This document shows, piece after piece, positions 16,511 through 60,365 of a stretch of DNA of 64,000 bases. The stretch comes from Macrostomum hystrix. Taxonomy: Eukaryota; Animalia; Platyhelminthes. The stretch is from contig CATNEN010000038.1 in NCBI GenBank assembly GCA_950097015.1, forward strand, positions 27,714,001-27,778,000. Reading direction: 5' to 3'. Numbering within the stretch: the stretch's first letter is position 1; each line of letters opens with the position of its first letter. The position numbers and the translations under genes are program-made. The notes beneath the pieces are model-generated. The model had not been told where the DNA came from, did not search any database, and saw only the letters and a list, made by a program, of their open reading frames with translations.

Positions 16511-16555
16511 GCATATGAAGCATAGCATACATAATGAGATAAATAATGAGATAAA

Positions 16556-16832
16556 TCTGCTCATTTCGCTGACTCCTGAGCACACACGCGCACAGATACT
16601 GTACACAGGCATACGCTCACACAGGTGTGTACATCTGCCTTGACTTTCTCATCGTCAGACAGTGTACACTTCACTGCGCCTTGGAGGTTGGCCCTCAAGG
16701 GCGTAAATTGCACGACAAGCCCCCAAGCCTTATCTCCACGGCTGCGCCCAAATAAATGTGGCCTCACAGTGGAATCGAACTTAGGGACCTTGATGCGAGA
16801 GGCAAACGCGATAACCGCTCTGCCACGAACCC
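16556..16832 (-). mobile_element. SINE family 1, 3'-truncated copy
   Basis: Reverse complement matches 1203-1465. Confidence 0.88.
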
Positions 16833-16982
16833 TCTACTTATACGAGCTACAATCTACATAACTATTCGATATCATGTAGCTATGATGTATGAGTAATTTG
16901 CAGTATAACTAATAAGCTTCTCTTCATAAATCCACGAGTTTAAGTTTATAAATCTTCGGCAGTTTAACTTTCTCTTACTGTT

Positions 16983-17295
16983 CAGGAGGACTGTTGGCAC
17001 CACGTCATCAAATTTGGTGACAGTAGTCCCGCAGCCGGCGTGAAAGCATGATTCTGCTTATGGCTTATTCCGCTCACACACACACAGATACCGTACGCAG
17101 GCACACACTCACACAGGTGTGTACATCTGTCCTGACATTCTCATCGTCAGGCAGTGTACACTTCACTGTGCCTTGGAGGTTCGCCCTCAAGGGCGTGAAT
17201 TGCGCTACAATAAATGTGGCGCCTTGCCGCGGAATCGAGGTCAGGGACATTGATGCGAAAGGCAAACGCGTTGGACCGTTCTGCCACTCACCCCC
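16983..17295 (-). mobile_element. SINE family 1, diverged copy with internal deletion
   Basis: Reverse complement is colinear with the family consensus. Confidence 0.8.
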
Positions 17296-17576: not shown

Positions 17577-18336
17577 TCAAACCATTCCAAATTTGACCCA
17601 GTCATCACTGGTCTCAATCGCTTCCTCCACCTGAGCGTCAGTGAACAGCAGCAAGCGACACAGTCCCAGTTTGCTGTTGAAGAGCACGTGTCTACTGGTG
17701 CCAGACTTCACCGCAGTAGCCATGCACTGGAGTGAGTTGGCCACCTCATACACATCTTCGTAGCAGTACTCGGTGTTAAAGTTGTAGCTGGTGCGCTTGA
17801 ACGGAGTCTGCCTCCAAGTGGCGCTGAAGATTGGCTCCATCAAAGCGTTTGGCACGAATTCGCACACGAAGCCTCCTTTGAAGGAGCAGTAGAAGTCCGA
17901 TAGCTTTCCAATCGCAGGCGACTCATCGAGCGGTTTCACTCTGAACACACCATTGTCTAGCACAAGGCAGTCTTGGTTGATCGCATTCTCCGTGTTCGGC
18001 TGGCCGTTTTCCCACAAAGACGGGTCCATGGGTAGAGCGCCTTTGTTCACAATGCTCTGCCAACCCGACTGATCGATCATTCTTTCATCTGGCAAGTCGG
18101 TAACTCCCAACCAGAGCATGATGCTGCAGTGAGCTGTGCGAATTGATAAGCTCACCTCCGAGCAGCAGGCACTGCCGATTGGCCGAGCACCAATCAAAGT
18201 TGTGCGACTTGTCCACGTAGACGCACTTACCGGCTTCGATTTGAAAAGGCTCCGGGCAAAAATCTGCTTTGCACAATGTGAGAAGCTGCATGCTGCAGAT
18301 CAGGAATTGGCACACTTGTAGAAATTTTAATTGCAT
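17577..18336 (-). pseudogene. C-type lectin-PAN copy A; frameshifting deletion near 18122
   Basis: N-terminal half (signal, CPEPF..C, WCSANRQC) and C-terminal half (WLGVTD, WENGQPN, FVCEF, TPFKRTSY, FTDAQVEEAIETS) are in different frames; about a dozen codons are missing relative to paralogs. Confidence 0.8.
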
Positions 18337-19611
18337 TTTCGTCTACTTTAAGAGTCACCGTCTCGAAATCCCTACGAAATCTCTACGTAGCTGTCTTAGC
18401 TATGGCAAGTTGGCAATTAAGTGATCAATTGAACACATCCTTATATTTTTTTCATAGCGTCTCTAATTGGCTGTGCAAACACTCGCCATCATCCAATCCT
18501 TGTGTTTATTTAGTTCGAGGACGTCACTTATTGCGACGTCACTTATTGCGACGTCAATTATTGATCGTCAGTCAACGTTTCTTTTTATCAATAAACTTAA
18601 AGAAAGGGTTTATCATTAGGAGGCAAAATGTTTATATAATTAAACGAATAAAGTCTATCGTTAAATATTCGCTTGAATAGACACCGTTCTTCGCCAATAG
18701 TGATAATGTTAAATGATTCGCCAATGCACATTGTACTCTTTTTCTAGCACAAAGACAGAACAAAGCACAAAAAATTGTTTCGATAGTTTCTATACTCGAT
18801 CTATATACGGCAAAATCTTACTTTCGCAGGTTGCCATTAAGTTCTCGAATAATTTCTGAAGCAGGCTACTGCCAGTAGCCTAATTAGTTCCCAAAGAGTA
18901 GCGTAAGCAAAACTAAACAAAGTTTTATTTATTATTTTACGAGTAATTACACGAGCTTGCCAAAAATATGTTCCATTTCATTATTTGCTAAAAATTCGGC
19001 TTTATAAAAGCTATACTTAACGGAATAAACGCCTGTTGCTAGGGCCGTGCATTCTGTCAAGCGACGTTTGAGATGCAGATTCGTGACCTCTCTGAATGAT
19101 GTTCCAAATTGATCAATTAAATATTTATTGATGCAAATCACAACAGAAGTGGAGTTGGCCACAAAAGAGACTGCGATATCGTCCGTCCTTCATGCAATGA
19201 GATTCTGCTCTGCTCGATCGTTTCATTTTAAATTTTTTAGACATTTCCATTAGACATTTTTTAGACTGCCTGGCACAGTTACACGTCAATAATAGCACAC
19301 AAGATCGTAAAACAGAGTGCTTCATGATGCTCAAAAGTCTAGAAATAATTTGCTTATGCCACAGCTGTCATTATTGAACTTTTTTTCGATACAGTCACGT
19401 CCATTTGTTGTGGTTAAATTCAAAAAGTACTATAGCGTAGTACATATCTGGCAAACGTCTTGAAATATCTGGCAAAATAATGTTCAAGTAAATTGGTGAA
19501 GGTACCTCGAGTATTACTTTATATCTTCATATTTTGTATAAATTCTTCAGACAAATTTAATCGATTCGTCAAGCAGGTAATTGTTTTGTTGGCTCTATAT
19601 AGTGTAGCAAG

Positions 19612-20093
19612 CTAGAGCATGCTGAACTTGACCCAGTCGGCGCTTGTCTCGATGGCCTCCTCAACCTGAGGCGTCGGTGAACTGCAGCTGGCGGCACTTT
19701 CCAAGCACGCTGTTGTACAGCACGTGTCTGCTGATTCCTGAGCTCATTGTGACGAACATGCACTCGAGATGGTCGGCCACGTCCAGGTCAGAGTAGCAGT
19801 ACTCAGAGCTCGGATTGTAGCTGGTTCGCTTGAACGGAGTCAGATGCCATGAGGCACTGGTGACAGGCTTGTACGGAGCTGCAGGTGCGAACTCGCAGAT
19901 GAATCCTTTTAGATCGGAGCATCGAAGGTCATAAAGATGCGCACTGCCGATTGGCCGAGCACCAGCTGAAACTATACGAAGTGTTGACGAATACGCACCT
20001 GCCAGCCTCCAAGCTGAACGGAGCCGGGCACTGAGCCTGCACTGACAGCAGCTAAATGACTAGAAGTAGAAACGCTGAGTAGTGTAGCAACAT
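19612..20093 (-). pseudogene. C-type lectin-PAN copy B
   Basis: TAG at codon 14 (CAG in paralogs); large deletion of the lectin core right after ...CAGTGCGCATC; +1 insertion in the FTDAQ block. Confidence 0.88.
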
Positions 20094-20949
20094 CGCCTTT
20101 GAGTTTAATAGAGGTTTGTAGTCGCACAGAGTAGACTCTGCAAGCGATTTTGTAATGCAACACTCTCTTCAAGGTCTCTTCAAGGCAATTTAAGACAACT
20201 TAATAACTGGATGGAGAATTTAAATTCTATGTTACTTATCTTTATAAATACGCACTCCATGTTTGTACGAGTTAGTGTTCTCTGTTTGCTCAAACATTTA
20301 AACGATTCGTCACGCAGGTAAATGAGTTGTTGGCTCTATTTAGTATACGGATACTGACACTGACACTCTAATAAAAAAAGTCGGGATATGCATTGTTCTG
20401 GCAGTGTTTTAGTTGTACAAAAAATCCGTTACTTCTTCTTTGTCAATTTTTATTGTCAACACAACTGACTGCTAATTTCAAGCATGCTAATTGTTGACTT
20501 TTCACTTACCAATATTACAAGTGCCTATCGTTGCTCATTGAAATTTAGACAAAGAAACGACTGTTTCTGCGTGAAAAAGCGTACAATCGTAACCCAAAGC
20601 TTCCAATTAGGAACCGAGAAAGCGGACCAGGTTGCGAGAGATTGAGCATGCGCCTATAGGACGGGTCTCCGACAGCGTCGCCATTCTAAGTTGACTTGTC
20701 AGAACACAGGTGACAAAACACTTTATCCTCCAAGTGTACTCCAAACAATTTGAACAAACAAAGCTATTAAAAGGGCATTCTGCAGCTTAAACATATCTCA
20801 CTTTAACATTATTAACTAATTTTTCGTTTCATAATCAGTTTTAAGCTACTTTTTTGTGCATTTTTTCATGGACAATGAAAGAAGCGTCGGACTCAACGCC
20901 TTATAACTATGAAAGGTTTCTATGAACTTACAGAGCAGTCCGAAGAAGC

Positions 20950-21750
20950 AGAGGATTAAGTTAATTTCGTATGGCTAAGGAATGTCTTGAAGCATGGAAA
21001 AGCTATTTTATAGATAAAATCTACCGCAAGATTAGAAATACCACGCTATTTTTCCCCGTGGGAGAAGACCACGGTACAGGTATTTCAAATACCTACTGCC
21101 TATTTCACAATAGCTCGCAAACCGAGTGACCGATTTTTGAGAAAGTTCACGATCCGCCTTTATCGATGAACCAACTTTCAAAGCCGTACGAGCCAGCATC
21201 GTCGAGTTATTCAGTGATTCTTGTCGAAGTGACCAGTGACCCTGGTGACAAGGACGTTTTCTTGTTGTCCCGTGCATTATCATGTGAGCTAGCGGGTATA
21301 TGTTGGTCAGTTTTGATTCTTATTGAATGATTCTCATTTTCGCAATCTGTTCAAAATCGATTTCACACTCTAAAGAACAGAAGACAAAACGTGCATTTAG
21401 AATGCTATCTATAGGAGCTTTTTCTGAGGAGCTGCAGTCTCATCTTCCCCGCCTTGCACACTGTTTTCCACAAAAACACCTCAGCTATAGGCTCTTAGCA
21501 GTCCAGTTAATAGTGCAGAGTCAATTTTTTGTCACAAATACTCGTACCAGTGGCTCTGTTTCAAAAAGCGAATCTTTGAAAATATCCTACATTCATCAAA
21601 ACCGGATGATTCAATCCGGTCCGTTCTGTTATTTCACTCTCATCTTTGCCCGATGTTGTGTTACATATTTGTCTGACTCTTTCTTCTCTTCCTGCTCTGC
21701 TTCTGGTAGTCAAGGGCACATCCTGGTGCATTGTTCTAAAGTACTTCCAT
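20950..21750 (-). mobile_element. Possible decayed Crypton-like tyrosine-recombinase remnant
   Basis: Across frameshifts: ..ESKLTNIY.. and ..LVTRVTGH/RQESLNN resemble Crypton YTNHS and I..TGH.S..SL..Y motifs; many stops. Confidence 0.3.
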
Positions 21751-22280
21751 GATCAGATGTTCTGTAAAAGATAAGATTTTTTTCAACCTTTATTTGCGTG
21801 ATGGCTTTAAGAGCACTAGCTCCCTCTGAAAAAAAGTATCAGCTATGACTTTTGCTTCTCGCGTTATTTGTCGATTATAATGAATAGATTTTGTCCTGTA
21901 GCGGCTCGTACGAGCAGTGGTCTGTAGTTTTGATTGCTTTCGCTAGGACAATATTGATTGAGCTAAATTGTGCGTAACTCGTAACTAAAGAGTTCACGAA
22001 TAAGTGAAGTATATATTTTATATAATAGATTCGTGGGCAGAGTGAGCTTTGGAAGAATGAGAAATTGTACCTGTACCGGGCGAGGAGTTAAATGCATAGA
22101 AAACAATTGGTGAATAAGGAACGGGTGGGCCTGGTACGAATAGTCTATGAACTAAAAGAATATATAAGCCTAACACAAGAAAAGTGCAGAGAAACCCAAT
22201 AGTAACTATGTTTGCAATAGAAAACATAACGAAGTTCTGGAGGAAACTAGTCTATTCTATAGAACATCGTCTATTTAGAC

Positions 22281-22923
22281 CAGGGGTCGGCAAACTCCGG
22301 CCCGCGGGCCAGATGCGGCCCTCGAAGCTCCCAAATCCGGCCCGTTGCCCCTTCCAACACCTATAGTATCCTGTCTCATCTCTCCCGTGTCTCATCTCTC
22401 CCCTGTCTCATCTCTCCCGTGTCTCATCTCTCCCCTGTCTCATCTCTCTCGTGTCTCATCTCTCCCGTTTCTCATCTCTCCCGTGTCTCATCTCTCTCGT
22501 GTCTCATCTCTCCCGTGTCTCATCTCTCCCGTGTCTCATCTCTCCCGTGTCTCATCTCTCCCGTGTCTCATCTCTCCCGTGTCTCATCTCTCCCCTGTCT
22601 CATCTCTCTCGTGTCTCATCTCTCCCGTTTCTCATCTCTCCCGTGTCTCATCTCTCCCGTGTCTCATCTCTCCCGTGTCTCATCTCTCACGTGTCTCATC
22701 TCTCACGTGTCTCATCTCTCCCGTGTCTCATCTCTCCCGTGTCTCATCTCTCCTGTGTCTCATCTCTCCCGTGTCTCATCTCTCCCGTGTCTCATCTCTC
22801 CCGTGTCTCATCTCTCCTGTGTCTCATCTCGCCCTTATATCATATTTCTATAATCAAAGCGGCCCGCTGTCGTCTTTTAGATTCTCTCTTTGGCCCGCCA
22901 GCTAATAAGTTTGCCGACCCCTG
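22281..22923. mobile_element. hAT-type MITE carrying an internal 16 bp minisatellite
   Basis: TIR CAGGGGTCGGCAAACT / AGTTTGCCGACCCCTG; perfect 8 bp TSD ATTTAGAC (22273-22280, 22924-22931); GGCCCG subterminal motifs. Confidence 0.92.
22370..22830. repeat. 16 bp minisatellite (GTCTCATCTCTCCCGT)
   Basis: Tandem units seen directly, inside the MITE. Confidence 0.92.
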
Positions 22924-22945
22924 ATTTAGACTATTGTTTACGGAT

Positions 22946-23533
22946 CTCTATATCTATTTGCAGGGGGGCCCGGGGCACTTGTCGCACGAGCGACGGAGCG
23001 GCACGCCCCCAGACCGGCGAACTAGGCGCTTAGCGCCCATCGCGCCGCCTCCCCTGAGCAGGCACCATACACAGCAGCACAGACCAGCCGGGGAGGGCAG
23101 GAGGCACCCAGAATAGGCAGCAGTGCCCCCACCCAGCCCCACACGCACAGAGCAGACCGAGCCGGGGCGGAAGTCTGATAAGAAATCAGTCCTCAGGGGG
23201 GGCCGGGTGATGAGTGTACACTTATCCAATCGCGCTGACGGAAGTCCAGAAAGCGCTCGGCGGTGTACACCCGCACTCCAGCCACCCCCCGCAAGGTCTC
23301 ACGCCCCAGCGCCAACGCACACAACTCACACAACGCAGAACAGGCACACAGAAGGTAGGAGCGAAGCTATTATTTCAAGCTTTAATTGCACGAAATATGG
23401 TGCACCTCCGCCGGTCGCTACTGTCCAAACCCCCCAACAAGTCCCGGAATTAATCGTGACTTGAAGGGAGAATCGAACTAGCGTCCTTTGGAGTGCGAGG
23501 CAGCGACGTTAGCCGCTGACCCACACGCCCCCC
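22946..23533 (-). mobile_element. tRNA-derived SINE family 2, full length (~590 bp)
   Basis: Head GGGGGGCGTGTGGGTCAGCGG...GTTCGATTC; tail CCCTGCAAATAGATATAG; 13 bp TSD ATTGTTTACGGAT (22933-22945, 23534-23546). Confidence 0.85.
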
Positions 23534-23988
23534 ATTGTTTACGGATGCGTTTAAATGACTTTAATGTTGATCACTTGGTTCGCATTTAGTATCACTGCCA
23601 TGCAAGATAGCTCGTATCATCACCAAAATTTTCTCTCCGATATGGATCACTTTCGTCGACATCCCTTGGGCCATATAGCAAGTCATTGACCCCAATTCAA
23701 TTTCTAAAACAATAACCAGCTTCAATATTACTCGTATATTTTAAACCAGAAGATTTCAAGACTTTCTAAACACTTTTTAGAAGTGTTTCAATTTAACGGA
23801 ATCATCTGCAGACTCATGTAAATAATTATTGTCAGGAGGAATTGTTGTTCAAGCTGGTATGCTTCTGAAAAAGAGCATACTGAAATGTAGATTCGGCAAA
23901 GACAGTCACTTGGTGCTGAAAATTCACGATTCTCTTATTCAACACGATTGCAAACAGTTTGACACCAATTCGAAAGTCAAATCCTTGC

Positions 23989-24720
23989 TCAGCGCACACT
24001 GAGCTTGACCCAGTCGGCGCTTGTCTCGATCGCGGCCTCCACCTGAGCGTCGGTGAACTGCAGCAGACGGCACTTCATCAGGCCGCGGTTGTACAGCACG
24101 TGTCTGCTGTTTCCAGCTCGCATCGCAGCCGCCACACAGTGCATGGCACTCCTCACCTGCAGCAGGTCAGAGTAGCAGTACTCAGAGCTCGGATTGTAGC
24201 TGGTTCGCTTGAACGGAGTCCGCTGCCATGAGGCACTGGCGACAGGCTTGTACGGAGCTGCAGGTGTGAACTCGCAGGCAAAGCCATATGGGAAAGAGCA
24301 TTGAAAATCGAAAATTAAACCGTTGTAAGATAGACAGTCTTCGCCAATCGTCCCTCCATTATTAGGGTTACTGGAACCCCAATTCAAGTCAATCGTCGAT
24401 TGTGTGATGTCTCCGTTTGTCATCCGCCAGCCGATCTTGTTGCTGACTCTCTCATCTGCCAGGTCCGAGCCTCCGATCCACAGCCTGCAGGTTCCGCAGC
24501 TCATGCTGGACATGTTGCTGAGCAGCTTCAGCGAGCTGAGCGAGCTCATGAGCTGGCCTCCGATCGATGCGCACTGCCGATTGGCCGAGCACCAGCTGAA
24601 CTTTTTCGAAGTGCTTCCGAACACGCACCTGCCGGCCTCTAAGCTGAACGGAGTCGGGCACTGAGCCTGCACTGACAGCAGCTGAATGCCGATAAGCAGA
24701 ATCAGGGAATTGAGCTGCAT
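23989..24720 (-). CDS. Secreted C-type lectin + degenerate PAN/apple domain, copy C
   Basis: Intronless 243 aa; signal peptide; CTLD motifs CP.F..C, W..A...C...GG.L, WIG, W....PN, EDC, D..C...FACE. Confidence 0.9.
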   Translation of the reverse strand: MQLNSLILLIGIQLLSVQAQCPTPFSLEAGRCVFGSTSKKFSWCSANRQCASIGGQLMSSLSSLKLLSNMSSMSCGTCRLWIGGSDLADERVSNKIGWRMTNGDITQSTIDLNWGSSNPNNGGTIGEDCLSYNGLIFDFQCSFPYGFACEFTPAAPYKPVASASWQRTPFKRTSYNPSSEYCYSDLLQVRSAMHCVAAAMRAGNSRHVLYNRGLMKCRLLQFTDAQVEAAIETSADWVKLSVR

Positions 24721-24778
24721 CGTAGCCGTGTATGAAACTTGAAAACTCTGGATTTGAGCTGACTAGAGCTCAACAGGC

Positions 24779-24818
24779 TTTTATAGTCGGGTTACTTTCG
24801 CAGCGGGATTCTGATTGG
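24779..24818 (-). promoter_or_regulatory. CCAAT + TATA core promoter of lectin copy C
   Basis: Reverse strand CCAAT (24814-24818) and TATAAAA (24779-24785), about 60 nt before the ATG; same layout as copy D. Confidence 0.55.
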
Positions 24819-26177
24819 TTAAATGAAGCAATATAGTACTCGAACAGCTATACTAATTCTACTGTGAAGTTTTCTAACTTTCAGATATTATTAGGTAATG
24901 CACTTTTAATATTTAAATATTCCCGGGTAAATGGATATTCTGCGGGAAATGGTCACTTGAGATTTTCTATTTTTCATCTTTACATTTTTATATTTTTCTC
25001 TGATTAGAATTTTCCTATCGATTTATACAAACGCTTCATCATACCTTTCGACACAATGTCAAAAAAGTAGCTAATATATAAAAGACTGGGTGCACCCCAC
25101 CTGCCCTTTTTGTGGCTTAGGTGAGCCAACTGCGGCGCACCACGTCACTTCGAAAAAGAGCGCAGGCTGCAGCTTGGCCATCGACGAGCTGACGAGCGTT
25201 TCGCCCCCCCGCAAGTAGTAAGTAAGTAGTAAGTATAACATTATATTGTACTTTTAATCGTGAGGAGTTAATGCTAGAATAGTCTACTAATAAATGGGAT
25301 CTAGCGCTGACCTACAGTGGTAATTAGAGCTTCAGTTTTGAAGAGGTGTGGAAGACCGTATACTTTTCAACGAACCCAGCAGTTAAATTTAAAAAACTAG
25401 CAGCTAGTTTTTATTCAGTTTATTCGGAACAGCGTCGAGAAGCACCGCTCATTATTGGCACCTGTGCCACTGGCTCTACATTCTTCTCAACTGGGTTAGG
25501 TTTAAGCTATAAGGCTATTCCTTAGTTTCATAAAAAATTCGGCATTAAAATTCTAATGAAACTTACCTTTATTAACGGCTGCTTAACAGCCATGAGACAA
25601 CAACCAAGTTGGTACAACTTTTGTTTAATTAACTAGGTACTTTAGTAGCAAGACACGGTGAATTTCCTGCTGATGAGAACGGCACAAACGAATAAACACC
25701 TGCTGCTGTTCACATGGCTGTCAATATCGTCTGTTAATTGGACTGAATTATCAAATAAGTTTTGGATAACTTAGTATAAATAAGACCATATAAATAAGCT
25801 ACGAAATAAGTACAACAGGAGAGTAAAAAGTTTAACAGTCAAAGTCACTGATTCATTTAATCATTCGTTTTTGTCCAAATAAATTCATAACCCGTAAACA
25901 GAGCAGTAGAGTACTTGATCACAAACATCGCACGTGTTTCCAACACGGTGCTGTCTGAATGGCAAAAGGTTATGTTCACGACAGTAACTTCTTAAGCTAA
26001 ATTCAAGCCGTCCACACCCCATTGCTTGAAAGTGATTTGAAGTGCTAATTTAGCTGCTTAGTACACCATAACAAAATGTGATTTACGGCTGGAGAATCGA
26101 GTGAATGTTGTTTAGAGCCAGCCAAAAATTTACATTTCCAACAATCTCGCTCGGTAACAAATCGTTTGTGCCTGCGT

Positions 26178-26273
26178 TCGGTATCTGTGTGCGTGTGTGC
26201 TCAAGAGTCAGCGAAATAGGCAGAATGGGCTCCTCACTGGCTGCGGGTCTAGTGTCACCAAATGATGTGCCTT
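26178..26273 (+). mobile_element. SINE family 1 fragment
   Basis: Matches the 3' body of the family. Confidence 0.7.
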
Positions 26274-26299
26274 TGAGCAATTTACTCACTTACCCACTT

Positions 26300-27072
26300 G
26301 GGGTTTCTCTGATAAAGACAGGCATTGGTTCTCTGATAAAGACAGGCATTGGTTCTCTGATAAAGACAGGCATTGGTTCTCTGATAAAGACAGGCATTGG
26401 TTCTCTGATAAAGACAGGCATTGGTTCTCTGATAGTGACAGGCATTGGTTCTCTGATAAAGACAGGCATTGGTTCTCTGATAGTGACAGGCATTGGTTCT
26501 CTCATAAAGAGAGGCATTGGTTCTCTGATAAAGACAGGCATTGGTTCTCTGATAAAGACAGGCATTGGTTCTCTGATAAAGACAGGCATTGGTTCTCTGA
26601 TAAAGACAGGCATTGGTTCTCTGATAAAGACAGGCATTGGTACTCTGATAAAGACAGGCATTGGTTCTCTGATAAAGACAGGCATTGGTTCTCTGATAGT
26701 GACAGGCATTGGTTCTCTGATAAAGACAGGCATTGGTTCTCTGATAGTGACAGGCATTGGTTCTCTCATAAAGAGAGGCATTGGTTCTCTGATAAAGACA
26801 GGCATTGGTTCTCTGATAAAGACAGGCATTGGTTCTCTGATAAAGACAGGCATTGGTTCTCTGATAAAGACAGGCATTGGTTCTCTGATAAAGACAGGCA
26901 TTGGTACTCTGATAAAGACAGGCATTGGTTCTCTGATAAAGACAGGCATTGGTTCTCTGATAAAGACAGGCATTGGTTCTCTGATAAAGACAGGCATTGG
27001 TTCTCTGATAGAGACAGGCATTGGTTCTCTGATAGAGACAGGCACTGGTTCTCTGATAAAGACAGGCATTGG
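26300..27072. repeat. 24 bp minisatellite (TTCTCTGATAAAGACAGGCATTGG)
   Basis: About 32 near-perfect tandem units. Confidence 0.95.
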
Positions 27073-27351
27073 AAGGGGCATTATTTATTATCATTAATTA
27101 TCAATGAAACGCGCACGCTACTTTGGGTGCTGATTTTTATTTTAATTTATATATATTTTTGGTTGCGCGGTTCACTGCTTTTCTGCTTTATTAAATTGGT
27201 TCTCCCATGATATTTTTACATCAGAGGGAATTGTGTTAGGGGCATTAGCTTATTATGGGATATTTCAATTGAGGATTTGCGAAACATATTGATGGGTTAT
27301 TTTAGCGTAATGTTGGGTAATTTTCTAATTAGGGGATAATATAAAATGAAA

Positions 27352-27705
27352 ATAATTGCAGGAGGGCTGCGGGCAATGGAACATCATTTGGTGACACTAG
27401 ACCCGCAGCCAGCGAGGAGGCAATTCTGCCCATTTCGCTGACTCCTGAGCACACACGCACACAGATACCGTACGCAGGCACACACTCACACAGGTGTGTA
27501 CATCTGCCCTGACTTTCTCATTGTCAGGCAGTGTACACTTCACTGCGCCTTGGAGGTTGGCCCTCAAGGGCGTAAATTCCATGACAAGCCCCCAAGTCTT
27601 CTCTCTGCGGCTGCGCCCCAAATGAATGTGGCCTCGCTGTGGAATCGAACTTAGGGACCTTGTTGCGAGAGACAGACGCGATAACCGCTCTGCCACCGAC
27701 CCCCC
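27352..27705 (-). mobile_element. SINE family 1, full-length copy
   Basis: Complete head, body and tail on the reverse strand. Confidence 0.9.
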
Positions 27706-28346
27706 TAATTTAAGGTATTTTTTTGCTTAGGGGTTTCTGCTTGTGCTCCCAGGCGGGCTTACATGCAAATTGCTGTCTGTTGTCTGTCTTAGTGGATGTC
27801 TTGTTGTCTGTTTATCCAGTAATCAAAATAAAATGGACGGAACCAATGGAAGGAGCTGTAAAAATTTTTTTATGGCAACATTTTAAAAAACGTAAGTTTC
27901 CTTTTGTAGGTGAACTCTTTGCAGGCCCACTTGGTGGCTTAGCATGCTAGTTTTTGCACACTAGACTGATCATTTTAAATGCGCAAATTTTTTTCACCCC
28001 AAACTAGGAATCTAAGAAGTTATCGATTTACTTTAGCTGCATTGTCATAAGAGTGGTAGCTTCCATACATGGTTAGAAGGAGGAGCAACTGCAACTCCCC
28101 TGACTTAAAAGTGCTCACAAACGCAAGGTATTCGTAAAATCCAAAGAAAAATGCTCCTTTGTGAAAAATTTGTCAATTTTTCCTGAAACGAAGTTTCAGC
28201 CCGACTTTTTTGTTCCTGTCGCCGTTTAGCGTCGAGGCCGCAACACTTGCATTAAAAAACCCTTGGCGTTAAAAAAGTCCCAACTTACGACTTGCTTGTC
28301 AAGTAAAAATGGTCAGTAAAAAACCTTGGCAATTGACTGCGTTCAG

Positions 28347-28372
28347 CCAATCGAAATTCTTTCATATAAAAA
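28347..28372 (+). promoter_or_regulatory. CCAAT + TATA core promoter of lectin copy D
   Basis: CCAAT at 28347 and TATAAAA at 28365, about 60 nt before the ATG. Confidence 0.55.
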
Positions 28373-28430
28373 CCCGTTGTAGCTTTCTCAGGAGCAGTTA
28401 CTGAATTCTTTAGTCTCATACACAGCCACG

Positions 28431-29156
28431 ATGCAGCTCAATTCCCTGATTCTGCTTATCGGCATTCAGCTGCTGTCAGTGCAGGCTCAGTGCCCGACTC
28501 CGTTCAGCCTGCAGGCTGGCAGGTGCGTGTTCAGAAACACCTCACCAAGCTTCAGCTGGTGCTCGGCCAATCGGCAGTGCGCATCGATCGGAGGCCAGCT
28601 CATGAGCTCGTTCAGCTCGCTGAAGCTGCTCAGCAACATGTCCAGCATGAGCTGCGGAAACTGCAGGCTGTGGATCGGAGGCTCGGACCTGGCAGATGAG
28701 AGAGTCGGCAACAAGATCGGCTGGCGGATGACAAACGGAGACATCACGCAATCGACGAGTGACTTGAATTGGGGTTCCAGTAACCCCAACGATGGAGGGG
28801 GCAATGAAGACTGCGCTTGTTACTCAGGAGGTTCAATTTTAGATTTCCGGTGCTCGATTGCTTATGGCTTTGCCTGCGAGTTCGCACCTGCAGCTCCGTA
28901 CAAGCCTGTCGCCAGTGCCTCATGGCAGCGGACTCCGTTCAAGCGAACCAGCTACAATCCGAGCTCTGAGTACTGCTACTCTGACCTGGACGTGGCCAAC
29001 CATCTCGAGTGCATGGCGGCCGCTATGAAATCGGGCAACAGCAGACACGTGCTGTACAGCAGTGTGCTGAAGATCTGCCGCCTGCTGCAGTTCACTGACG
29101 CTCAGGTTGAGGAGGCCATCGAGACGAGCGCCGACTGGGTCAAGTTCCGCATGTAA
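28431..29156 (+). CDS. Secreted C-type lectin + degenerate PAN/apple domain, copy D
   Basis: Intronless 241 aa ORF; same motifs as copy C; AATAAA near 29213. Confidence 0.9.
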   Translation: MQLNSLILLIGIQLLSVQAQCPTPFSLQAGRCVFRNTSPSFSWCSANRQCASIGGQLMSSFSSLKLLSNMSSMSCGNCRLWIGGSDLADERVGNKIGWRMTNGDITQSTSDLNWGSSNPNDGGGNEDCACYSGGSILDFRCSIAYGFACEFAPAAPYKPVASASWQRTPFKRTSYNPSSEYCYSDLDVANHLECMAAAMKSGNSRHVLYSSVLKICRLLQFTDAQVEEAIETSADWVKFRM

Positions 29157-29394
29157 TGAGCGAGCTTGCTAGCTGTGATATTTTCTTGGCAAATGATAAA
29201 AAGTGCTGTAACAATAAAATTTTGAACGCAGAACGTCAGTAAGAACTTATCTGGATGTTTGTTTGTTTGTGTTTTCCATGCGAATGTGTGCCATATTTGA
29301 TATAATTGGAGATGTCCATTGACTATATATGTAACCCCCTTTCGGGATTCATCCCAGGTTTTTTGTTTCAAATAGCGCCTAATTTTCTAAATTA

Positions 29395-29680
29395 GAGGAG
29401 TGCCATGCACTGTGTGGCGGCTGCGATGCGAGCTGGAAACAGCAGACACGTGCCGTACAACCGCGGGCTAGCGGTGTGCCGCCTGCTGCAATTCACTGAC
29501 GCTCAGGTGGAGTCCGCGATCGAGACAAGCGCCGACTGGGTCAAGCTCAGTGTGCGCTGAGCAAGGATTTGACTTTGGAATTGGTTTTAAACTGTGTGCG
29601 AGCCGCTTTAATATCAGAATCGTTAATCTATTCAACAGCGATTAACACTGAGTGACTATCTTTACAGTATCTACATCTGA
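29395..29680 (+). pseudogene. Orphan C-terminal cassette of the lectin family (copy G; coding 29396-29540 plus C-like 3' UTR)
   Basis: RSAMHCVAAAMRAGNSRHV...WVKLSVR* and the downstream flank match the copy C tail and 3' flank (23885-24155). Confidence 0.85.
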
Positions 29681-30599
29681 TTTTTTTCGAATAGCTTCGA
29701 GTGATGATGCATGTCCCATGCATCGACTAAATAATCAAATTAAATAAATAAATATAAAAATAAATAAGCTGAACATTGGATGTCTCCAAGTTTTTTTCAC
29801 ATTACGCAGCGCGATTGAGAGAAAAAGTTGGGCAGCCCACTATAGCTATACCCACAACAGTTATAATCGGAGTAAGAGAGAGAAAAATTGCTTAGGCAAA
29901 AATAATTTTTATCTCAATTTGCGCTTAATTCTACTAACATCTCTCATCGCAAGAGTAGGATAATACTTATAATGCTTTTTATCAAGCAATGTAGCTCGAT
30001 TGATGAATTTATATTCAACTTTCTTGACTTTCTGGCCATAGACTATTTTACAAATGGAGGTCCATGTTGGTATTGATGTAGTCTCCAGGCGGGAACCCTA
30101 TTCACTTGCAGAGGGTGGCGGTCACAGACGGACAATGGCATTGACGCGCAGCGCTAACGTTGTCAAGCCCACGGGCTGCGCAAATATACGAGCAACCGAA
30201 AGTTCATTTCTCTCTCTCTCTCGCATCGGCTCGCGAGCCACTACAAGAGACACTATTGGATTAACAGAACAGATTGTGCAGTAGGTGCAAATAAAAGTTG
30301 AAAACGAGGACCCCTTCGTATTTAAATGTGTAGTTGGAATAGCTCGTAGATATAGCACTGCCCGTTCAATTCCTAAAAAGAAAATCCCAGCAAATTAAAA
30401 AAGTGGTTTCAAAATATGTAAATTTATTTCCATTTATAAGTCTAACTTAAAATAAGCCAAAAGGTTCCTCTGATACCTGATTGCTTCAAATTTCTGCTAA
30501 AGCAGAAACTAAATTTATTGTTTTTTTCACTTGAGTCTTTAACTTGAGTCCTAAGTCAAGGGCTAGACTGAAAATTCAAACTCAAGGCTCGACCCTCAC

Positions 30600-31343
30600 T
30601 TAGCCAAGCTCGTACACGCTGAACTTGACCCAGTCGGCACTTGTCTCGATGGCCTCCTCAACCTGAGCGTCAGTGAACTGCAGCAGGCGGCAGATCTTCA
30701 GCACACTGTTGTACAGCACGTGTCTGCTGTTGCCCGATTCCATAGCGGCCACCATGCAGTCGAGATGGTTGGCCACCTGCAGCAGGTCAGAGTAGCAGTA
30801 CTCAGAGCTCGGATTGTAGCTGGTTCGCTTGAACGGAGTCCGCTGCCATGAGGCACTGGCGACAGACTTGTACGGAGCTGCAGGTGCGAACTCGCAGGCA
30901 AAGCCATAAGAAATCGAGCACCGGAAATCTAAAATTGAACCTCCTGAGTAACAAGCGCAGTCTTCATTGCCCCCTCCATCGTTGGGGTTACTGGAACCCC
31001 AATTCAAGTCACTCGTCGATTGCGTGATGTCTCCGTTTGTCATCCGCCAGCCGATCTTGTTGCTGATTCTCTCATCTGCCAGGTCCGAGCCTCCGATCCA
31101 CAGCCTGCAGGTTCCGCAGCTCATGCTGGACATGTTGCTGAGCAGCTTCAGCGAGCTGAATGAGCTCATGAGCTGGCCTCCGATCGATGCGCACTGCCGA
31201 TTGGCCGAGCACCAGCTGAAGCTTGGTGAGGTGTTTCCGAACACGCACCTGTCAGCCTGCAGGCTGAACGGAGTCGGGCACTGAGCCTGCATTGACAGCA
31301 GCTGAATGACTAGAAGTAGAAATACAGAACCATTTAGCTGCAT
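30600..31343 (-). CDS. Secreted C-type lectin + degenerate PAN/apple domain, copy E
   Basis: Intronless 247 aa ORF; near-identical to D in the lectin domain; TATA-like element near 31401-31408. Confidence 0.9.
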   Translation of the reverse strand: MQLNGSVFLLLVIQLLSMQAQCPTPFSLQADRCVFGNTSPSFSWCSANRQCASIGGQLMSSFSSLKLLSNMSSMSCGTCRLWIGGSDLADERISNKIGWRMTNGDITQSTSDLNWGSSNPNDGGGNEDCACYSGGSILDFRCSISYGFACEFAPAAPYKSVASASWQRTPFKRTSYNPSSEYCYSDLLQVANHLDCMVAAMESGNSRHVLYNSVLKICRLLQFTDAQVEEAIETSADWVKFSVYELG

Positions 31344-32365
31344 TATTACACAGTTTGCAATTTTAAGAAAGAAAATTAGCTGACAATATGCTGCACTAGC
31401 TTTTTATAATGCATACTATTTACTCTGTTCGATTCTATCTGTTGACGAAGCGAGAGAAGTAAATTCCGGGGAACTTCCGGTAACCGGGATCAACAGTCAT
31501 GGCGGGGATATTCTTAAAAAACAGACATTCATTTAACTAAATACGAGTAAATTATGCGTGTTTAACAGTGGCTGCAGCTGGGTGTGTGAGGAGGACATCC
31601 ATATCCTTGTTGTTTGCTAAGTTTGGCTGCTTCTGAAATCTGAAAAACCAAGAGTGTGAGCCACAAAAAAGCCAAAAAGCTCGATTTCATTATTACGAGT
31701 ACAATTTAGTATTTTTGCAAATTAACCAGCTCAAGCGATCGCTGCGAAATGGTATACCATGTATTCTGTGTGGTATACTGCCCGCAAAGAAAGTAAATTA
31801 AAACTCTTACGATTTACGATTCCATTGCAGCGACAAACGCTAGAAGACAGGGCTAATGCATCCTGTTAATTTTTCCTGTAGACATACACTTTAATGTAAT
31901 TGACTTCCTGGAGCTATTTGTGTCCATGGTAACGGCAGGCAAACAAATAGCTTCATAAGTTGACAGCCCCAGCATGTGGAACAATAGGTATGACGACGTT
32001 AAGTAAACGAATGAGATGACGAAAGTGGCTTGCACATACGAGGTATTGCATTTTTGTTTGGTAACATTTACTGAAGATTTCATCTTTTACGTTCGTATTT
32101 ACTACTTAATATGTCAGTAATTAGTAATTATACTACTTTCCAAGCCTAATTATTGAATTATATAGCAAAGCGACGAATCATTTGGGCATTTAAATGATTT
32201 CTGAATTTTCCGACAAAGCGTTGCTAACTGAGAAAATACTTTATAAAAATGTTTTAACTGTCAAACAGGTCTGTTATAACTGTTGGCAGGCTTTAGAAAA
32301 TAATATGTTGGCGTCTTCGTCACACTTCCAAAAGTTTTAGACGCCTAAACAGTGTGCAACTGCTT

Positions 32366-33112
32366 TTAGTACACCTTGAACATGTACTTGACCCAGTCAG
32401 CGCTCGTCTCGATGGCCTCCTCAACCTGAGCGTCGGTGAACTGCAGCAGGCGGCACTTCATCAGGCCGCGGTTGTACAGCACGTGTCTGCTGTTTCCAGC
32501 TCGCATCGCAGCTGCCACACAGTGCATGACACTCTTCACCTGCAGCAGGTCAGTGTGGCAGTACTCAGAGCTCTGATGGTAGCTGGTTCGCTTGAACGGA
32601 GTCCGCTGCCATGAGGCACTCGACTCGACCCGCTTGGAAATTTCCGAATCGAATTCGCAGGCAAAACCAAGTGCAGAACTGCACATGTCATTCGCGATAT
32701 TTCCCTGTACGGTGAACTTCTGAATGCAGTTTTCCATAGTGTCTCTATTCGGGTCTCCCGGATGCCAAAACGAGTCTTCCAGCGAAAGTATCCCCTTATT
32801 GTTTACCTGCTGCCAGCCAGTCCGATTGCTCCATCTTTCGTTGGCCAAGTCGGTCACTCCAAGCCAAATTTTTGAATAGTTTCTGAAGCTCATCATGGTG
32901 GTGAGCAGCTGCAGCGAGCTGTAAGAGTTCATTAGCTCGCCTCCGATCGATGCGCACTGCCGATTGGCCGAGCACCAGCTGAAACTCAGCGAATAGTTCA
33001 CGAACACGCATTTGCTTGAGTCTAGACTGAACGGAGCCGGGCACTTAGCCTGCACAATGAGAAGCAGCAGACTCCAGACCACAATCTGAAGGGGACTCAA
33101 AACAACAGCCAT
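32366..33112 (-). CDS. Secreted C-type lectin + degenerate PAN/apple domain, copy F
   Basis: Intronless 248 aa ORF; divergent lectin core (WLGVTD, WHPGDPN, ENC, ANDMC); C-terminus nearly identical to copy C. Confidence 0.9.
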   Translation of the reverse strand: MAVVLSPLQIVVWSLLLLIVQAKCPAPFSLDSSKCVFVNYSLSFSWCSANRQCASIGGELMNSYSSLQLLTTMMSFRNYSKIWLGVTDLANERWSNRTGWQQVNNKGILSLEDSFWHPGDPNRDTMENCIQKFTVQGNIANDMCSSALGFACEFDSEISKRVESSASWQRTPFKRTSYHQSSEYCHTDLLQVKSVMHCVAAAMRAGNSRHVLYNRGLMKCRLLQFTDAQVEEAIETSADWVKYMFKVY

Positions 33113-34201
33113 GGACTAAGGATGTTGTATTGAATGTCTTCTATATCGAAGCGTCACTTTTTAGCAAAATTAACTTATCCCAGATTAAATTAAGTGCTGC
33201 GTGTCTGCCAAATGATGCATTTTTATTGCAGGTGTCTGTTTTCTTCATTTTGATTGGTCAGCTTAGTTTGCACCTATCATGCTCGATCAATGCATGCATG
33301 CTTACTTCATGTTAAGCGCAATTAAAAATGCATTGCCAATTTTAGTAGCTCATTAGAAGGACGCCACACTCGAAATCTAAGGGACACGTAGAAAGGCATT
33401 TTTTCGAATGGTGTCTAATTCAAAATTCAAATTCAAAAAGCATTCAAGGCTCATTTATACCGTATAGTTGATTAATATAGTCGTTCCGAAAATCTTATAA
33501 CTCTGCAATTGGTTGCTTAGAACAATTTCGAAACAATTTTACAAGTAAAACACAAATTCAATTAAGCTTTAGTTGTTACTTAGTAGTAGTAAGTGAATAT
33601 GTTGTGCTCAGAGGTTAGTTTTAGATTAGGAAATATTGTATACAGATGCGAGCGTTCTTGCATAAATTCTTTACTTATTAATTAACTTACTTAAGTACTT
33701 GTAATTGCGTATTAGTTAACAGATGTAAAAAACTTTACTTAAGCCATCGGGATTGCTATACTTGAGCACATTGCAGATGGCAGTCCGATTGGTAGTGTTT
33801 CTTGAGTCAACACTCTATCGCTGGACGAACTACAGAACTACAGCGATTGGCTAGACTCTGTATAAGGCTGCTATATGCACACTGAACAAGTGGCAAATTA
33901 ATGCTAAGCTAAAACAGAACTAAAGGCAAAAATGCCAAAAGCAATTAGAAAGTGACTTTGGTAGGAATTAACTAAACCAACACAAGCGCATACCAGATTA
34001 GCAGGTCAAACTTATATTAATCTCATTTGCCTGTCTTCTCAATGTTCCATGACAATCTTTGATGTATATGTATTGTCAGCCTCAAGTCAGTGGTCCTTCT
34101 CAGTTCTCACTTCTCAGTGGCGAAACGAAAATAGACCCGAACTTACAAAAGCTGAGAGTTTTCAGAAAGTATTACATGAAAGACAAATTTTCTAGATGCA
34201 A

Positions 34202-36274: not shown

Positions 36275-39200
36275 ATGAAGACATTGTCTACTTTAGCACT
36301 TCTGTGGATTTTCCGCTGTCAGCTCGCCGATTTAAACGCTAGTTCCCAGCTGACTCCCGAATATTCCACCGGCCGTGCGTTTCGTTCGAACACTTACCTG
36401 ATATTCAGAGAAGGTGGCATCTCCGCCGCCTACAGAAGACTGGTGGGCTTAGACATCCGACCGCCTGTGCAGCAGCTACCTACCGTTCGCGCATATCTGG
36501 GCCTGCAATACGCCGCAGTCGGTAAGATGGAGAGACTCACGCTGCACAGATTCGCCCGCTCCGTGGCCGCAATGAAGTACAACTATTACGCCTCTGATAG
36601 TACTTTCTATCGGGACAGCTTCCAGCCAGTGTGTCCACAGAATCATCCTACAGATTTAGAAAAGTCTGATGCTCGTTTAAAGAGAATCCTGCCCTACCTG
36701 AAGCGACAGGATGAGGAGTGCCTGTACCTGAATGTCTACACGCCTGTGTTGGGTGAGTAAGCCAGGTTTACCTAATGCGAGGCACTGTGATAGATCTACC
36801 TTCGTGTAATCGTACACGATAAAAAATATTTGGTCAGATCTTTTAATCGGATGACGCCGCAAGCACAAGACTATCTTGTTCTTCCGTATAAAAGGCTCAC
36901 TTACACTGTCGACAAACGATGCTAGAACACACGTTGTACTTCCGAATCTCTTCTATGATCCTTCTAGCCTCGTACGGTCAAGTGTTCTTGTAATTGACAA
37001 CTCAATGACAGCAAAGCACTGCAACGAGATCAAATACTGCAATTTGAGTGCAAAGACTATGACCATTCGTTAAGAATATTTTTTTCTAATTGTGAAGCTC
37101 TAAAACACAGAACAATATTCTCCCAATCTGTCAATCACTCTTAACTGAAAATCTACGGCACATTATGCATATCAAACTTGTTTTTTTTTCGTTGTGACCA
37201 GACATGACATGCACGCAGACTCGAAGTGGCTTCTTCCGCATAGTATTCTGAGCTAAACGGCTTTCAGCCAAATACACCTTTAGCCCTGGGATAACGGAGC
37301 ATCATGATTTGCACTGTAATTCAGTCGCAATGAGAACTAGGGCTAGAGAGAAGGACACGCAGACAATGACAGATTAAGATGGGAGAACAATGCCACATTA
37401 ATTGGCCTTTAATTAGGCGAACTCTCTCCCAGGAAGGGTCATCCGCTCTTTGTCGGTCTGTCGCAACCCCTACTACAATTGTCTCCAAAATGTGCAGAAA
37501 CTGCAGCGGATAACAATAAGTTCAGCGTTGGGCAGAAACAGCATACAGAAGCAAGCTGAATGTGCTGCAGAAACTTTCATTGCCATCTCATCAGCCCTGC
37601 ACTGCATGGCGTATTGTGCAGTGCAAATGATTTTATTGAAAGATTGCAGCCGGAAGTTATTAAAAGTACATGCGATCGCGGCTGTTCATCTAACGATGCG
37701 GAGGATAGATAGGAATTCAAGTAACCAAACTGGGCAGATAGACGTACAGCCAATACCACAGGAGCAGCTACTGTGCGGTACATGGATAGGCTGCGTACAG
37801 CTGCAGTTCAGTCCGTGGACAGGAAGGGGGTAGCATACCGATCTACATTTATGCTCCATCTGATAACTCTCCCGACAAAGTATTTATGAAATAGCTCACC
37901 ATGGCCCTCTAAATCCATCCTTCTAAATACGTTGATTCAACCCCCGTGTCCTATAGGCGGTAGTCCAGCTGGTTTTACGCCCAAATCTTGAAGCTGTGTG
38001 CTCCCGACGCCGGCTATCAGGTTGCCGAATCGTGTTTTGCGAGCAGTTTGACTCAGAACCCGCAGCTTCTCTGAAAGAAAGTAGATTGGCACCGAGCATG
38101 TGCAACCCTCCCTTTGCTTCAATCTTACCCTCGATAACGTTCCTGCACCCGTCCATTCAGGCTCTCTCTCTCCCTATTTCTGTGTCAAAAAATTCGACGG
38201 CTTCCGGTCATAGGACGTACGGGAGAGAGTAACTTAGAGAGGGTGCGAAAATGTGTGAAGTGTTGTAGGCACGGAGAAGCGACAAACCATTACTTATTTT
38301 AGACTCGTGGTCAATACTACTGGCCAACAGCTCAGGTACTGCTTAGTAATCAGCGCAGGAAGGAAACGTTTGAGAGTTGTGAATGAATTTAACTCTTGCT
38401 AAATTTTTAACGTTCAAAATAATCTCTTCTTAGAAACCAAGCAAAACTTTGTAGTAATTTCTCTTTAAAGTTCTCGCCTCCAAAACACAACAGATTCCTA
38501 CGACAACGATAACAAATTTTCCAACTTTCATCGCCGCTACAAGCCGTTGCTACCTGTGCTAGTCTTTGTCCACGGCGATAGTTACCTGTGGGGCTCTGGC
38601 AATGCTTACGATTTAAGCGTTCTCTGCGCTGTTAGTCGAACGATTGGCGTCACCTTGAACTATCGACTGGGAAGCTTGGGTGAGGCACTGAATGGGATCA
38701 GGGATAATTGGAGGGAAGTGACAACTCACTGAATGGGATCAGGGGGATTGGAGGGGAGTGACAACTCACTGAATGGGATCAGGGGGATTGGAGGGGAGTG
38801 ACAACTCACTGAATGGGATCAGGGGGATTGGAAGAGAGTGACAACTCACTAAATGGGATCAGGGGGATTGGAGGGGAGTGACAACTCACTAAATGGGATC
38901 AGGGGGATTGGAGGGAAGTGACAACTCACTGAATGGGATCAGGGAGAATTGGAGGGGAGTGACAACTCACTGAATGGGATCAGGGATAATCGGAGGGGAG
39001 TGACAACTCACTGAATGGGATCAGGGATAATCGGAGGGGAGTGACAACTCACTAAATGGGATCAGGGGGATTGGAGGGGAGTAACAACTCACTGAATGGG
39101 ATCAGGGAGAATTGGAGGGAAGTGACAACTCACTGAATGGGATCAGGGAGAATTGGAGGGAAGTGACAACTCACTGAATGGGATCAGGGGGGATTGGAGG

Positions 39201-59800: not shown

Positions 59801-60365
59801 ATCCTCTACCCTCCTCTACCGTCCTCTACCCTCCTCTACCCTCCTCTACCCTCCTCTACCCTCCTCTACCCTCCTCTACCCTCCTATACCCTCCTCTAAC
59901 CTCCTCTAACCTCCTCTACCCTCCTATACCCTCCTCTAACCTCCTCTAACCTCCTCTACCCTCCTCTACTCTCCTCTACTCTACTCTACTCTACTCTACC
60001 TTTCCCTGCTCTTTCCTCCTCTACCCTCCTTTACCCTCCTCTACCCTCCTCTACCCTCCTCTACTCTCCTCTACCCCCTTCCCTCCTTTTCCTTCCACTA
60101 CCATCGACCATCGACCCTCCTCTACCCTCCTCTACCCTCCTCTACCCTCCTCTACCCTCCTATACCCTCCTCTAACCTCCTCTAACCTCCTCTACCCTCC
60201 TCTACCCTCCTCTACTCTCCTCTACTCTCCTCTACCCTCCTCTACTCTCCTCTACTCTACTCTACTCTACTCTACTCTACTCTACCTTTCCCTGCTCTTT
60301 CCTCCTCTACCCTCCTTTACCCTCCTCTACCCTCCTCTACCCTCCTCTACTCTCCTCTACCCCCT
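56860..60365. repeat. ~3.5 kb C/T-rich 10 bp satellite (CTCTACCCTC and variants)
   Basis: Tandem units seen directly; strong strand asymmetry. Confidence 0.95.

Follow-up and report, generated by a model that had tools for sequence, protein, structure and literature searches.

The window analysed here is a 64,000-nucleotide (nt) stretch of the genome of the flatworm Macrostomum hystrix (G000:C38:27714001-27778000); our subject is a cluster of genes within it that encode proteins with a C-type-lectin-like domain (CTLD) followed by a PAN-like domain. The genome analysed comprises 220.45 Mb in 42 contigs and represents one haplotype of one strain; the published assembly is of inbred line SR1 and was built from PacBio and Illumina reads (PMC10468722). 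All coordinates are window positions unless a contig prefix is given. A preliminary description of this DNA recognized seven intronless copies, A to G. This is an overcount: a listing of open reading frames (ORFs) together with tblastn searches defines four intact single-exon genes (C, D, E and F), two pseudogenes (A and B) and one fragment (G). Labels beginning with L denote paralogs from elsewhere in the genome, of which the close ones (L002, L005–L010 and others) were added to the comparisons.

17577..18336, minus strand: copy A, pseudogene (three-frame translation, alignment with L027, start and stop codons checked)
19612..20093, minus strand: copy B, pseudogene (blastn; nearest relatives outside the window)
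23989..24720, minus strand: copy C, intact, 243 amino acids (aa); signal peptide, C-type-lectin-like domain and PAN-like domain (ORF, AlphaFold2 model, CTLD fold)
28431..29156, plus strand: copy D, intact, 241 aa; chimeric, resembling C at the 5′ end, E in the body and L006 at the 3′ end (ORF, alignments)
29395..29700, plus strand: fragment G, the last 163 coding nt (to 29557) and a C-like 3′ flank (three-way alignment)
30600..31343, minus strand: copy E, intact, 247 aa (ORF, alignment)
32366..33112, minus strand: copy F, intact, 248 aa (ORF, alignment)

Relative to L027, its nearest relative, copy A has lost 32 nt at about 18130/18131, which shifts the reading frame. Copy B has an in-frame stop after the codons for FLLLVI, lacks ∼300 nt of the lectin core and is frameshifted close to its 3′ end; by blastn it is 93.6% identical to L008 and 93.2% to L002 (both outside the window) and 90.0% to D, and its 3′ half is nearest to L008 and L002, not to D. 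Copy F is a divergent member of the family, with 74% nucleotide identity to C except in one tract (alpha, below) and in short blocks of identity.

The protein family

Copy C has 137 genomic matches at E≤0.001, nearly all of them uninterrupted frames of ∼240–290 codons, and these lie mostly on contigs C38 and C39 in local clusters. Most likely this is a large, lineage-specific family of single-exon genes for secreted proteins of ∼240 aa, in which a C-type-lectin-like and a PAN/apple-like domain follow a signal peptide (judged by eye). The closest named protein outside the genome is a C-type-lectin-domain protein of Macrostomum lignano (52% identity), and all named relatives come from that species; further relatives are encoded on short contigs. 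An exact look-up of six family proteins in the protein collection found none, and a literature search (on Macrostomum C-type lectins, on flatworm C-type lectins with PAN domains and on Macrostomum lectins in seminal fluid) returned no paper describing the family, in keeping with the earlier statement that it was not recognized as a described system. The process discussed below is itself textbook; the family is apparently undescribed.

The window's intact proteins belong to the CTLD superfamily by sequence match, fold and cysteine framework. Pfam Lectin_C matches residues ∼42–152, with D (33.5 bits), E (34.0) and F (26.1) above the cut-off of 22.6 bits and C (22.1) just below it; the frameshifted copy A gave no Lectin_C match. 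An AlphaFold2 model of copy C based on a 44-sequence family alignment (A1) reached a mean predicted local distance difference test score (pLDDT) of 86.8 and a predicted template-modelling score of 0.83, against a mean pLDDT of only 35 for a single-sequence run. Residues 18–153 of the model adopt a C-type-lectin-like fold: Foldseek retrieves Mincle and DC-SIGN at E 1e-7 with a target-normalized template-modelling score of 0.76, and VIA-align superposes the model (range 18–153) on CTLDs with Z 16.2 and a root-mean-square deviation (rmsd) of 2.4 Å over 127 residues. Mannose-binding protein, DC-SIGN and Mincle share this fold at Z 15–16 and rmsd 2.3–2.5 Å over about 120–130 residues.

Like canonical C-type lectins, the family has the long-form cysteine pattern, a WIGL-like motif and the position of the xPN...E/QDC...xD site. 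Among the 44 aligned sequences C32, C50 and C149 (copy C numbering) are invariant and C21, C129 and C141 occur in at least 90%, and the WIGL-type motif is kept across the family through W81 and G83 (‘LWIGG’/‘WLGV’). Unlike canonical C-type lectins, the proteins have three extra, largely conserved cysteines (C44, C75 and C78), a fused C-terminal PAN-like domain and, as read from the alignment, a degenerate EPN/WND calcium-sugar motif: NPN with FD or LD in C (SNPNN...IFDF) and in D and E (SNPND...ILDF), DPN with ND in F (GDPNR...IAND), and GQPNT...LSDF in A. By the same reading a complete EPN...ND pair occurs only in paralogs L006, L007 and L015.

The C-terminal domain is probably PAN/apple-like, and the preliminary ‘C-type lectin-PAN’ label accordingly holds with PAN membership as its probable part. 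Pfam PAN_1 recognizes the last 86 aa of 12 of the 43 family members searched (best E 1.1e-6), with no match for copy C itself; a family profile of the segment matches apple domains of apicomplexan MIC4/microneme proteins in the PDB (E 0.0037–0.0084) over ∼30 residues; and its ESM Atlas neighbours are PAN clusters (scores 0.84–0.86), a lead only. In the model the segment forms a strand, a helix (192–202), two strands, a short helix and a final strand, all at pLDDT >90. Whole-model Foldseek and VIA-align lists are filled by CTLD matches and do not resolve this part separately. The segment holds only three conserved cysteines (C182, C195 and C217). In alignment A1 C44 is invariant, C182 nearly invariant and C75 present in most members; a disulfide tying the PAN-like to the lectin domain is possible on this pattern.

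All copies are intronless, and homology between them stops at the limits of the coding sequence or shortly beyond: D and E show 94.8% identity over a stretch that begins at the ATG and runs 12 nt beyond the stop codon, and their flanks are unrelated. Copying via mRNA would leave copies intronless and limit homology to the transcribed part. However, C and D have diverged yet alignable upstream sequence; C, D, E and L002 share a TATAAA box about 125–128 nt before the first mature cysteine codon; no poly(A) remnants are seen at the 3′ ends; and tight local clusters are atypical of retrocopies. Retroposition would, moreover, leave the within-gene change of nearest relative, described next, unexplained. 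A retrogene origin of the copies is unlikely, and distinctly so. Counts of strict TATA and CCAAT motifs across the whole family were not clearly above the control.

Mosaic copies and single exchange events

The mosaic structure of these genes is real and far beyond chance. The tracts on which the argument turns are the following, listed with one distant partner.

24041..24170, minus strand: alpha tract in C (C nt ∼551–680), F-like, the rest of C being D/E/L002-like (triplet test; tree of the third segment, P3)
28412..28508, plus strand: 5′ tract common to D and C, made up of 19 nt upstream of the ATG and the identical first 78 coding nt (alignment; triplet test)
29157..29394, plus strand: L006-like import in the 3′ flank of D, 9 differences in 236 nt against the L006 flank (96%)
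17580..17911, minus strand: conversion tract common to A and L027, extending from the last part of the lectin domain through the complete PAN domain; recent; L027 is intact and lies 140 kb away
G000:C38:27475314-27476021: paralog L002, 260 kb from D

Copy C provides the plainest example. Its nearest relatives are D, E and L002 across nt 121–333 and 433–552 (0–3 differences per 90 nt) and then F across nt 493–705 (2–7 per 90 nt). C and F differ at four positions in nt 551–680 against 213 in the first 483 nt; the alpha tract of C differs from D, E and L002 at 15–29 positions per 90 nt, and F outside this stretch stands at 40–50 differences per 90 nt from every other copy. Fragment G carries the same alpha sequence, with 152 of 163 nt matching C (93%) and 139 of 163 matching F. 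At the other end of the gene, C and D are identical over exactly the first 78 coding nt and then accumulate 12 differences in nt 79–120. D and E have a common lectin loop (0–2 differences per 90 nt across nt 274–492), B and E a common 18-nt run, TTTCTACTTCTAGTCATT, encoding FLLLVI, and B and D the C-terminal motif beta.

Two further patterns that had been put forward as exchanges do not stand up as such. The supposed switch of E from alpha to beta within the C-terminal cassette is not significant (p 0.45–0.63): the LLQVAN... state of E reads as an ancestral one. L005 and L007 have it as well, and a 3-nt deletion is common to D, L002, L008 and B. The ‘WLGVTDL..ER..GWQ’ core common to A and F is close to the family consensus and thus reads as a shared ancestral state; the nearest relative of A is L027, outside the window.

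That the closest relative changes along the gene, as the preliminary description had it, is borne out by formal tests. For ten paralogs the pairwise homoplasy index (PHI) is 0.4415 against a permutation mean of 0.5243±0.0070, a value reached by none of 2000 permutations, and the same holds for third codon positions alone. Maximum-descent triplet tests of the 3SEQ type resolve C as D/E/L002-like with an F-like tract at nt 562–669/696 (p<5e-5) and D as E-like with a C-like tract at nt 9–49 (p<5e-5). A scan of 990 ordered triplets from 11 paralogs leaves at least five separate events after Bonferroni correction: an F/L009-like PAN stretch in C, a D 5′ end matching that of C, an L006-like 3′ end in D and E, an L005-like 3′ end in L002, and an L010-like PAN stretch in L007. 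Maximum-likelihood trees of three segments (codons 1–78, 79–160 and 161–243) from 28 paralogs conflict: C nests in the D/E/L002 clade for the first and second segments, with support of 92 and 98, and pairs with F as its sister in the third. No single tree fits all segments, each segment's tree being rejected on the data of the others by approximately unbiased tests (p≤1e-5).

Could such a pattern arise with no exchange at all, from convergent or parallel protein evolution and from differences in rate along the gene? Constraint does vary along the protein, and both the PAN C-terminus and the FSWCSANRQCAS motif are conserved family-wide. However, the shared tracts are identical at silent sites, in line with the third-position PHI; dS (synonymous divergence) ranges from 0 to ∼0.9 within one gene pair; imports reach into non-coding flank, as they do after D; and rate variation cannot alter which gene is the nearest relative. 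We find this explanation scarcely credible.

Two events can be followed in detail. Locus D is layered: weakly C-like upstream sequence is followed by 78 coding nt identical to those of C, then by a body resembling E and, from nt 611, by L006-like sequence. Nucleotides 611–726 differ from L006, which lies 790 kb away, at five of 116 positions; further 5′ the identity to L006 is only 69–84%. The L006-like sequence continues past the stop codon of D as 239 nt of flank and ends with a microhomology of a few nucleotides at 29392–29397. After this junction C-like sequence resumes – first the last 163 coding nt, which are G, then a C-like 3′ flank. The L006-like import and the resumed C-like tail together indicate that G is the original 3′ end of locus D, displaced by the inserted patch, and not a separate copy. 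With one homologous end and the other joined by microhomology, the patch would fit synthesis-dependent repair or template switching. Isolated C-terminal (PAN-end) fragments also lie near full-length genes in other clusters, for example at G000:C38:27479709-27479873, 26969039-26969197 and 28525998-28526126; exchange within the family may repeatedly leave displaced or incomplete 3′ ends behind as a by-product.

The second event joins A and L027, which differ at three positions in the last 333 nt (99% identity) against 95 of 361 upstream (74%; Fisher p = 3.5e-26). This tract shows that a pseudogene takes part in exchange.

Since the analysis is based on one assembly, chimeras or collapses produced by assembling or polishing the reads of similar paralogs must be considered: the paralogs share exact blocks of 35–100 nt, and short-read polishing can copy variants between paralogs. 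Against this, the genes are short (∼0.75 kb each) and their flanks unique, so that long reads would span them; the source line is highly inbred and its assembly comprises 42 contigs (PMC10468722); and the tracts hold together over long distances, with 99% identity across as much as 333 nt. A comparison with read contigs, which covers 28300–33200 (4901 letters), points the same way. Across gene/flank junctions the window agrees exactly with short-read DNA unitigs of run X1, which may stem from the sample used for the assembly. Runs X2–X4 come from a second study (∼50 Mb of contigs each, whose kind we infer from the coverage pattern; they show presence, not absence), and their contigs reproduce the chimeric 3′ end of D and pass unbroken through the D/G junction (29097–29602) with zero differences. 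An assembly artefact is highly improbable.

Within the compared stretch the X2–X4 contigs cover only D and its 3′ side to about 29675, leaving intergenic DNA uncovered and E and F unseen. This pattern resembles that of RNA, in which case D would be expressed and G would lie within its 3′ UTR (untranslated region). One X2 contig (28450–28744) fits D with five differences and then continues with 41 nt encoding MLISIYV, the N-terminus of L002, so that this paralog too is represented in an RNA-like run.

Silent sites and blocks of identity

Divergence at silent sites is strikingly uneven along the gene. For C and D, dS is 0 in codons 1–19 and again in 146–186, 0.10 in codons 20–100, and as high as 0.65 across the loop and 0.90 across the variable stretch of the PAN domain. 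A profile of the proportion of synonymous differences (pS) among eight paralogs, drawn from four clusters spread over about 2 Mb, gives the same picture: against an overall mean of 0.30, pS is 0.016–0.034 in codons 151–185 and 0.088 in codons 46–65, but 0.51–0.67 in codons 106–140 and 0.50 in codons 196–215, with a maximum of 0.68. Synonymous diversity thus ranges ∼40-fold along the gene, and none of 5000 permutations of codon columns reaches the observed minimum or variance. The two minima correspond to two blocks.

28551..28585, plus strand: identity block 1 (copy in D), encoding FSWCSANRQCAS; exact 35-mer
19936-19970, 24566-24600, 31186-31220 and 32949-32983: other exact copies of identity block 1
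28881..28985, plus strand: identity block 2 (copy in D), linker and start of the PAN domain, about codons 151–185; lowest pS

The 35-mer of block 1 is exact in B to F, where 0 matches are expected by chance, and has 23 genomic copies with at most two mismatches, some on another contig. Block 2, the most homogenised segment, contains a 24-mer that is exact in A to F. The left breakpoints of the PAN-stretch exchanges fall just 3′ of block 2 (C nt 562–611), which upholds the earlier observation that switch points sit beside blocks identical at silent sites. The blocks are best read as probable products and substrates of homology-dependent exchange, to which protein constraint and codon bias would add. 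A conserved recombination signal within them was considered and rejected: among 29 representatives with <60% identity the silent sites of the blocks are largely free, no family-wide nucleotide anchor signal was found, and near-identity at silent sites is a feature of the subfamily only.

The lectin loop presents the opposite case. Its pS is 0.5–0.68 and its ratio of nonsynonymous to synonymous divergence (dN/dS) is 0.08–0.5 in unsaturated pairs, with no consistent excess over 1. Divergence at silent sites and low dN/dS together make the loop look like an old island that has escaped homogenisation, not a targeted hypervariable site.

Origin and significance of the mosaic

We consider it likely that germline interlocus gene conversion produced the mosaic; inverted pairs may also have undergone some crossing-over or inversion. 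The family of secreted CTLD-PAN proteins in which this took place would be large and quick to turn over. Paralogs would exchange patches of roughly 40–900 nt by non-allelic conversion in the germline, with partners arranged in tandem, in inverted orientation or at distances of as much as about 0.8 Mb. Exchange would begin and end within high-identity stretches, and for this reason the two framework blocks would stay homogenised, silent sites included. The lectin loop region and the ∼100-nt PAN variable stretch would stay old and divergent and move between genes as units. Pseudogenes would also join in. At locus D the 3′ coding end of a paralog, with its 239 nt of flank, would have been inserted and the original 3′ end left behind as G.

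Several considerations weigh against this reading. In a single haplotype, conversion is indistinguishable from crossing-over or inversion between paralogs; as C/D and D/E are inverted pairs, some of the chimeras could stem from inversions. The low pS of the blocks could in part reflect selection on nucleotide sequence or codon bias: the 35-mer is found with at most two mismatches even in paralogs that share about 50–60% of residues. The alpha tract of C, the A/L027 tract and other events lie outside the stretch compared with reads, and the direction and timing of each event, like the repair mechanism, are inferred only. As to function, the degenerate EPN/WND site of C, D and E (NPN...FD/LD) means that sugar binding is not assured.

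A different account would see in the cluster a selected, combinatorial recognition repertoire, in which the blocks are dedicated anchors, pseudogenes serve as donors, and new lectin/PAN combinations are favoured by selection, perhaps with somatic shuffling. In its fullest form this would be a germline repertoire of >100 genes for secreted two-domain binding proteins, serving flatworm defence or mate/gamete recognition, with a modular layout kept by selection: between homogenised anchors there would lie a lectin loop of old, divergent sequence and a PAN cassette that can be swapped, and patch exchange, pseudogene fragments included, would keep making new lectin/PAN pairings. The recurrence of breakpoints beside one homogenised block speaks for it, as do at least four to five exchanges of the PAN variable stretch among 11 paralogs; intact genes have tracts in common with pseudogenes A and B and with fragment G; the variable parts map to the lectin loop region and to a helix and strand of the PAN domain; and D and E differ by six nonsynonymous and no synonymous changes in codons 187–216. 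However, homology-dependent repair alone puts breakpoints next to identity blocks, the silent sites of the blocks are not conserved among distant family members, the loop has the low dN/dS reported above, contigs from pooled-animal reads show no variants beyond the paralogs, and many ordinary tandem families have the same appearance. We give the repertoire a small chance. Of the preliminary proposal of a ‘combinatorially diversified secreted lectin family’, the part that stands is the formation of mosaics by exchange between paralogs, on the evidence of PHI, the surviving triplets and the segment trees; nothing sets the pattern apart from ordinary germline conversion, and three of the seven supposed copies are dead or fragmentary.

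The signal peptide, two binding-type domains, variable site residues and an overall dN/dS of 0.35–0.7 would suit proteins that bind outside the cell and evolve under relaxed or diversifying pressure, with binding surfaces that may differ between paralogs. No data favour any one of an immune, a mucus or a reproductive role over the others.

Between lectin genes lie two minisatellites, at 22372–22834 (16-nt unit ×29) and, between the divergently oriented C and D, at 26305–27072 (24-nt unit ×32); unit identity is 94–95%, and the long ‘ORFs’ in both are artefacts of the repeats. A dispersed repeat links 16553–16839 and 17012–17201, beside A, with 27386–27710, ∼0.8 kb upstream of D (87–91% identical); pieces of it also lie <1 kb from lectin paralogs L020 and L025 on another contig, and it may be a common mobile element. 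Strand composition is extreme at 56001–62000 (GC skew −0.65 to −0.92, GC content up to 0.56), and GC skew is +0.3 to +0.4 at 38001–40000 and 50001–52000; all three stretches are probably low-complexity or satellite sequence.

Comparison with known systems places the cluster closest to converted tandem families. In the GOT1 paralogs of Tigriopus, islands of divergence persist despite gene conversion (PMC3728101). Shared with such families are patchy, non-reciprocal-looking tracts of tens to hundreds of nucleotides, a nearest relative that changes along the gene, heterogeneous synonymous divergence with a homogenised framework and divergent islands, and breakpoints in identity blocks. Unlike them, the present family has at least 137 matches and partners up to about 0.8 Mb apart in both orientations, and one event has an end joined by microhomology and left a gene tail, G, in duplicate.

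Sea-urchin Sp185/333 (SpTransformer) is a mosaic, clustered family of immune genes (PMC5103432, PMC5491942), and it too comprises small, tightly clustered secreted genes that are mosaics of shared elements with tandem repeats (here minisatellites) between genes. There is no homology between the two: the flatworm proteins have folded CTLD and PAN domains in place of repeat/element proteins, and their mosaic is one of substitution-type patches, not of the presence or absence of elements. For immune induction, RNA editing and more variants than genes per animal, all traits of Sp185/333, there is no evidence in the flatworm family. The polymorphic mucins of Schistosoma mansoni are a secreted family partly diversified by recombination (PMC2576457). 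With these and with snail FREPs the present genes share their standing as a lophotrochozoan or flatworm family of secreted or lectin type, whose clustered paralogs are partly diversified by recombination or gene conversion. Architecture differs (immunoglobulin superfamily and fibrinogen domains, or mucin repeats, versus CTLD and PAN), and for FREPs somatic diversification is reported. FREPs and schistosome mucins have a demonstrated host–parasite role; the CTLD-PAN family is not known to have one. Should the repertoire be real after all, the family would be a flatworm counterpart of FREPs and SpTransformer.

The cluster offers a clean case of region-limited concerted evolution, with a ∼40-fold synonymous range inside a 0.75-kb gene and a recurrent breakpoint site, and the D/G event has kept its own footprint in the form of an imported flank followed by a displaced gene tail. 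It also carries a warning: ‘hypervariable loops’ and ‘cassettes’ in expanded lectin families need not mean immune-type diversification, the loop here being old at silent sites. Because the gene trees of the family are not trees, orthology and dN/dS analyses in Macrostomum comparative genomics are affected. A large family of secreted CTLD-PAN proteins may, finally, matter for the surface, mucus, defence or reproductive biology of Macrostomum.

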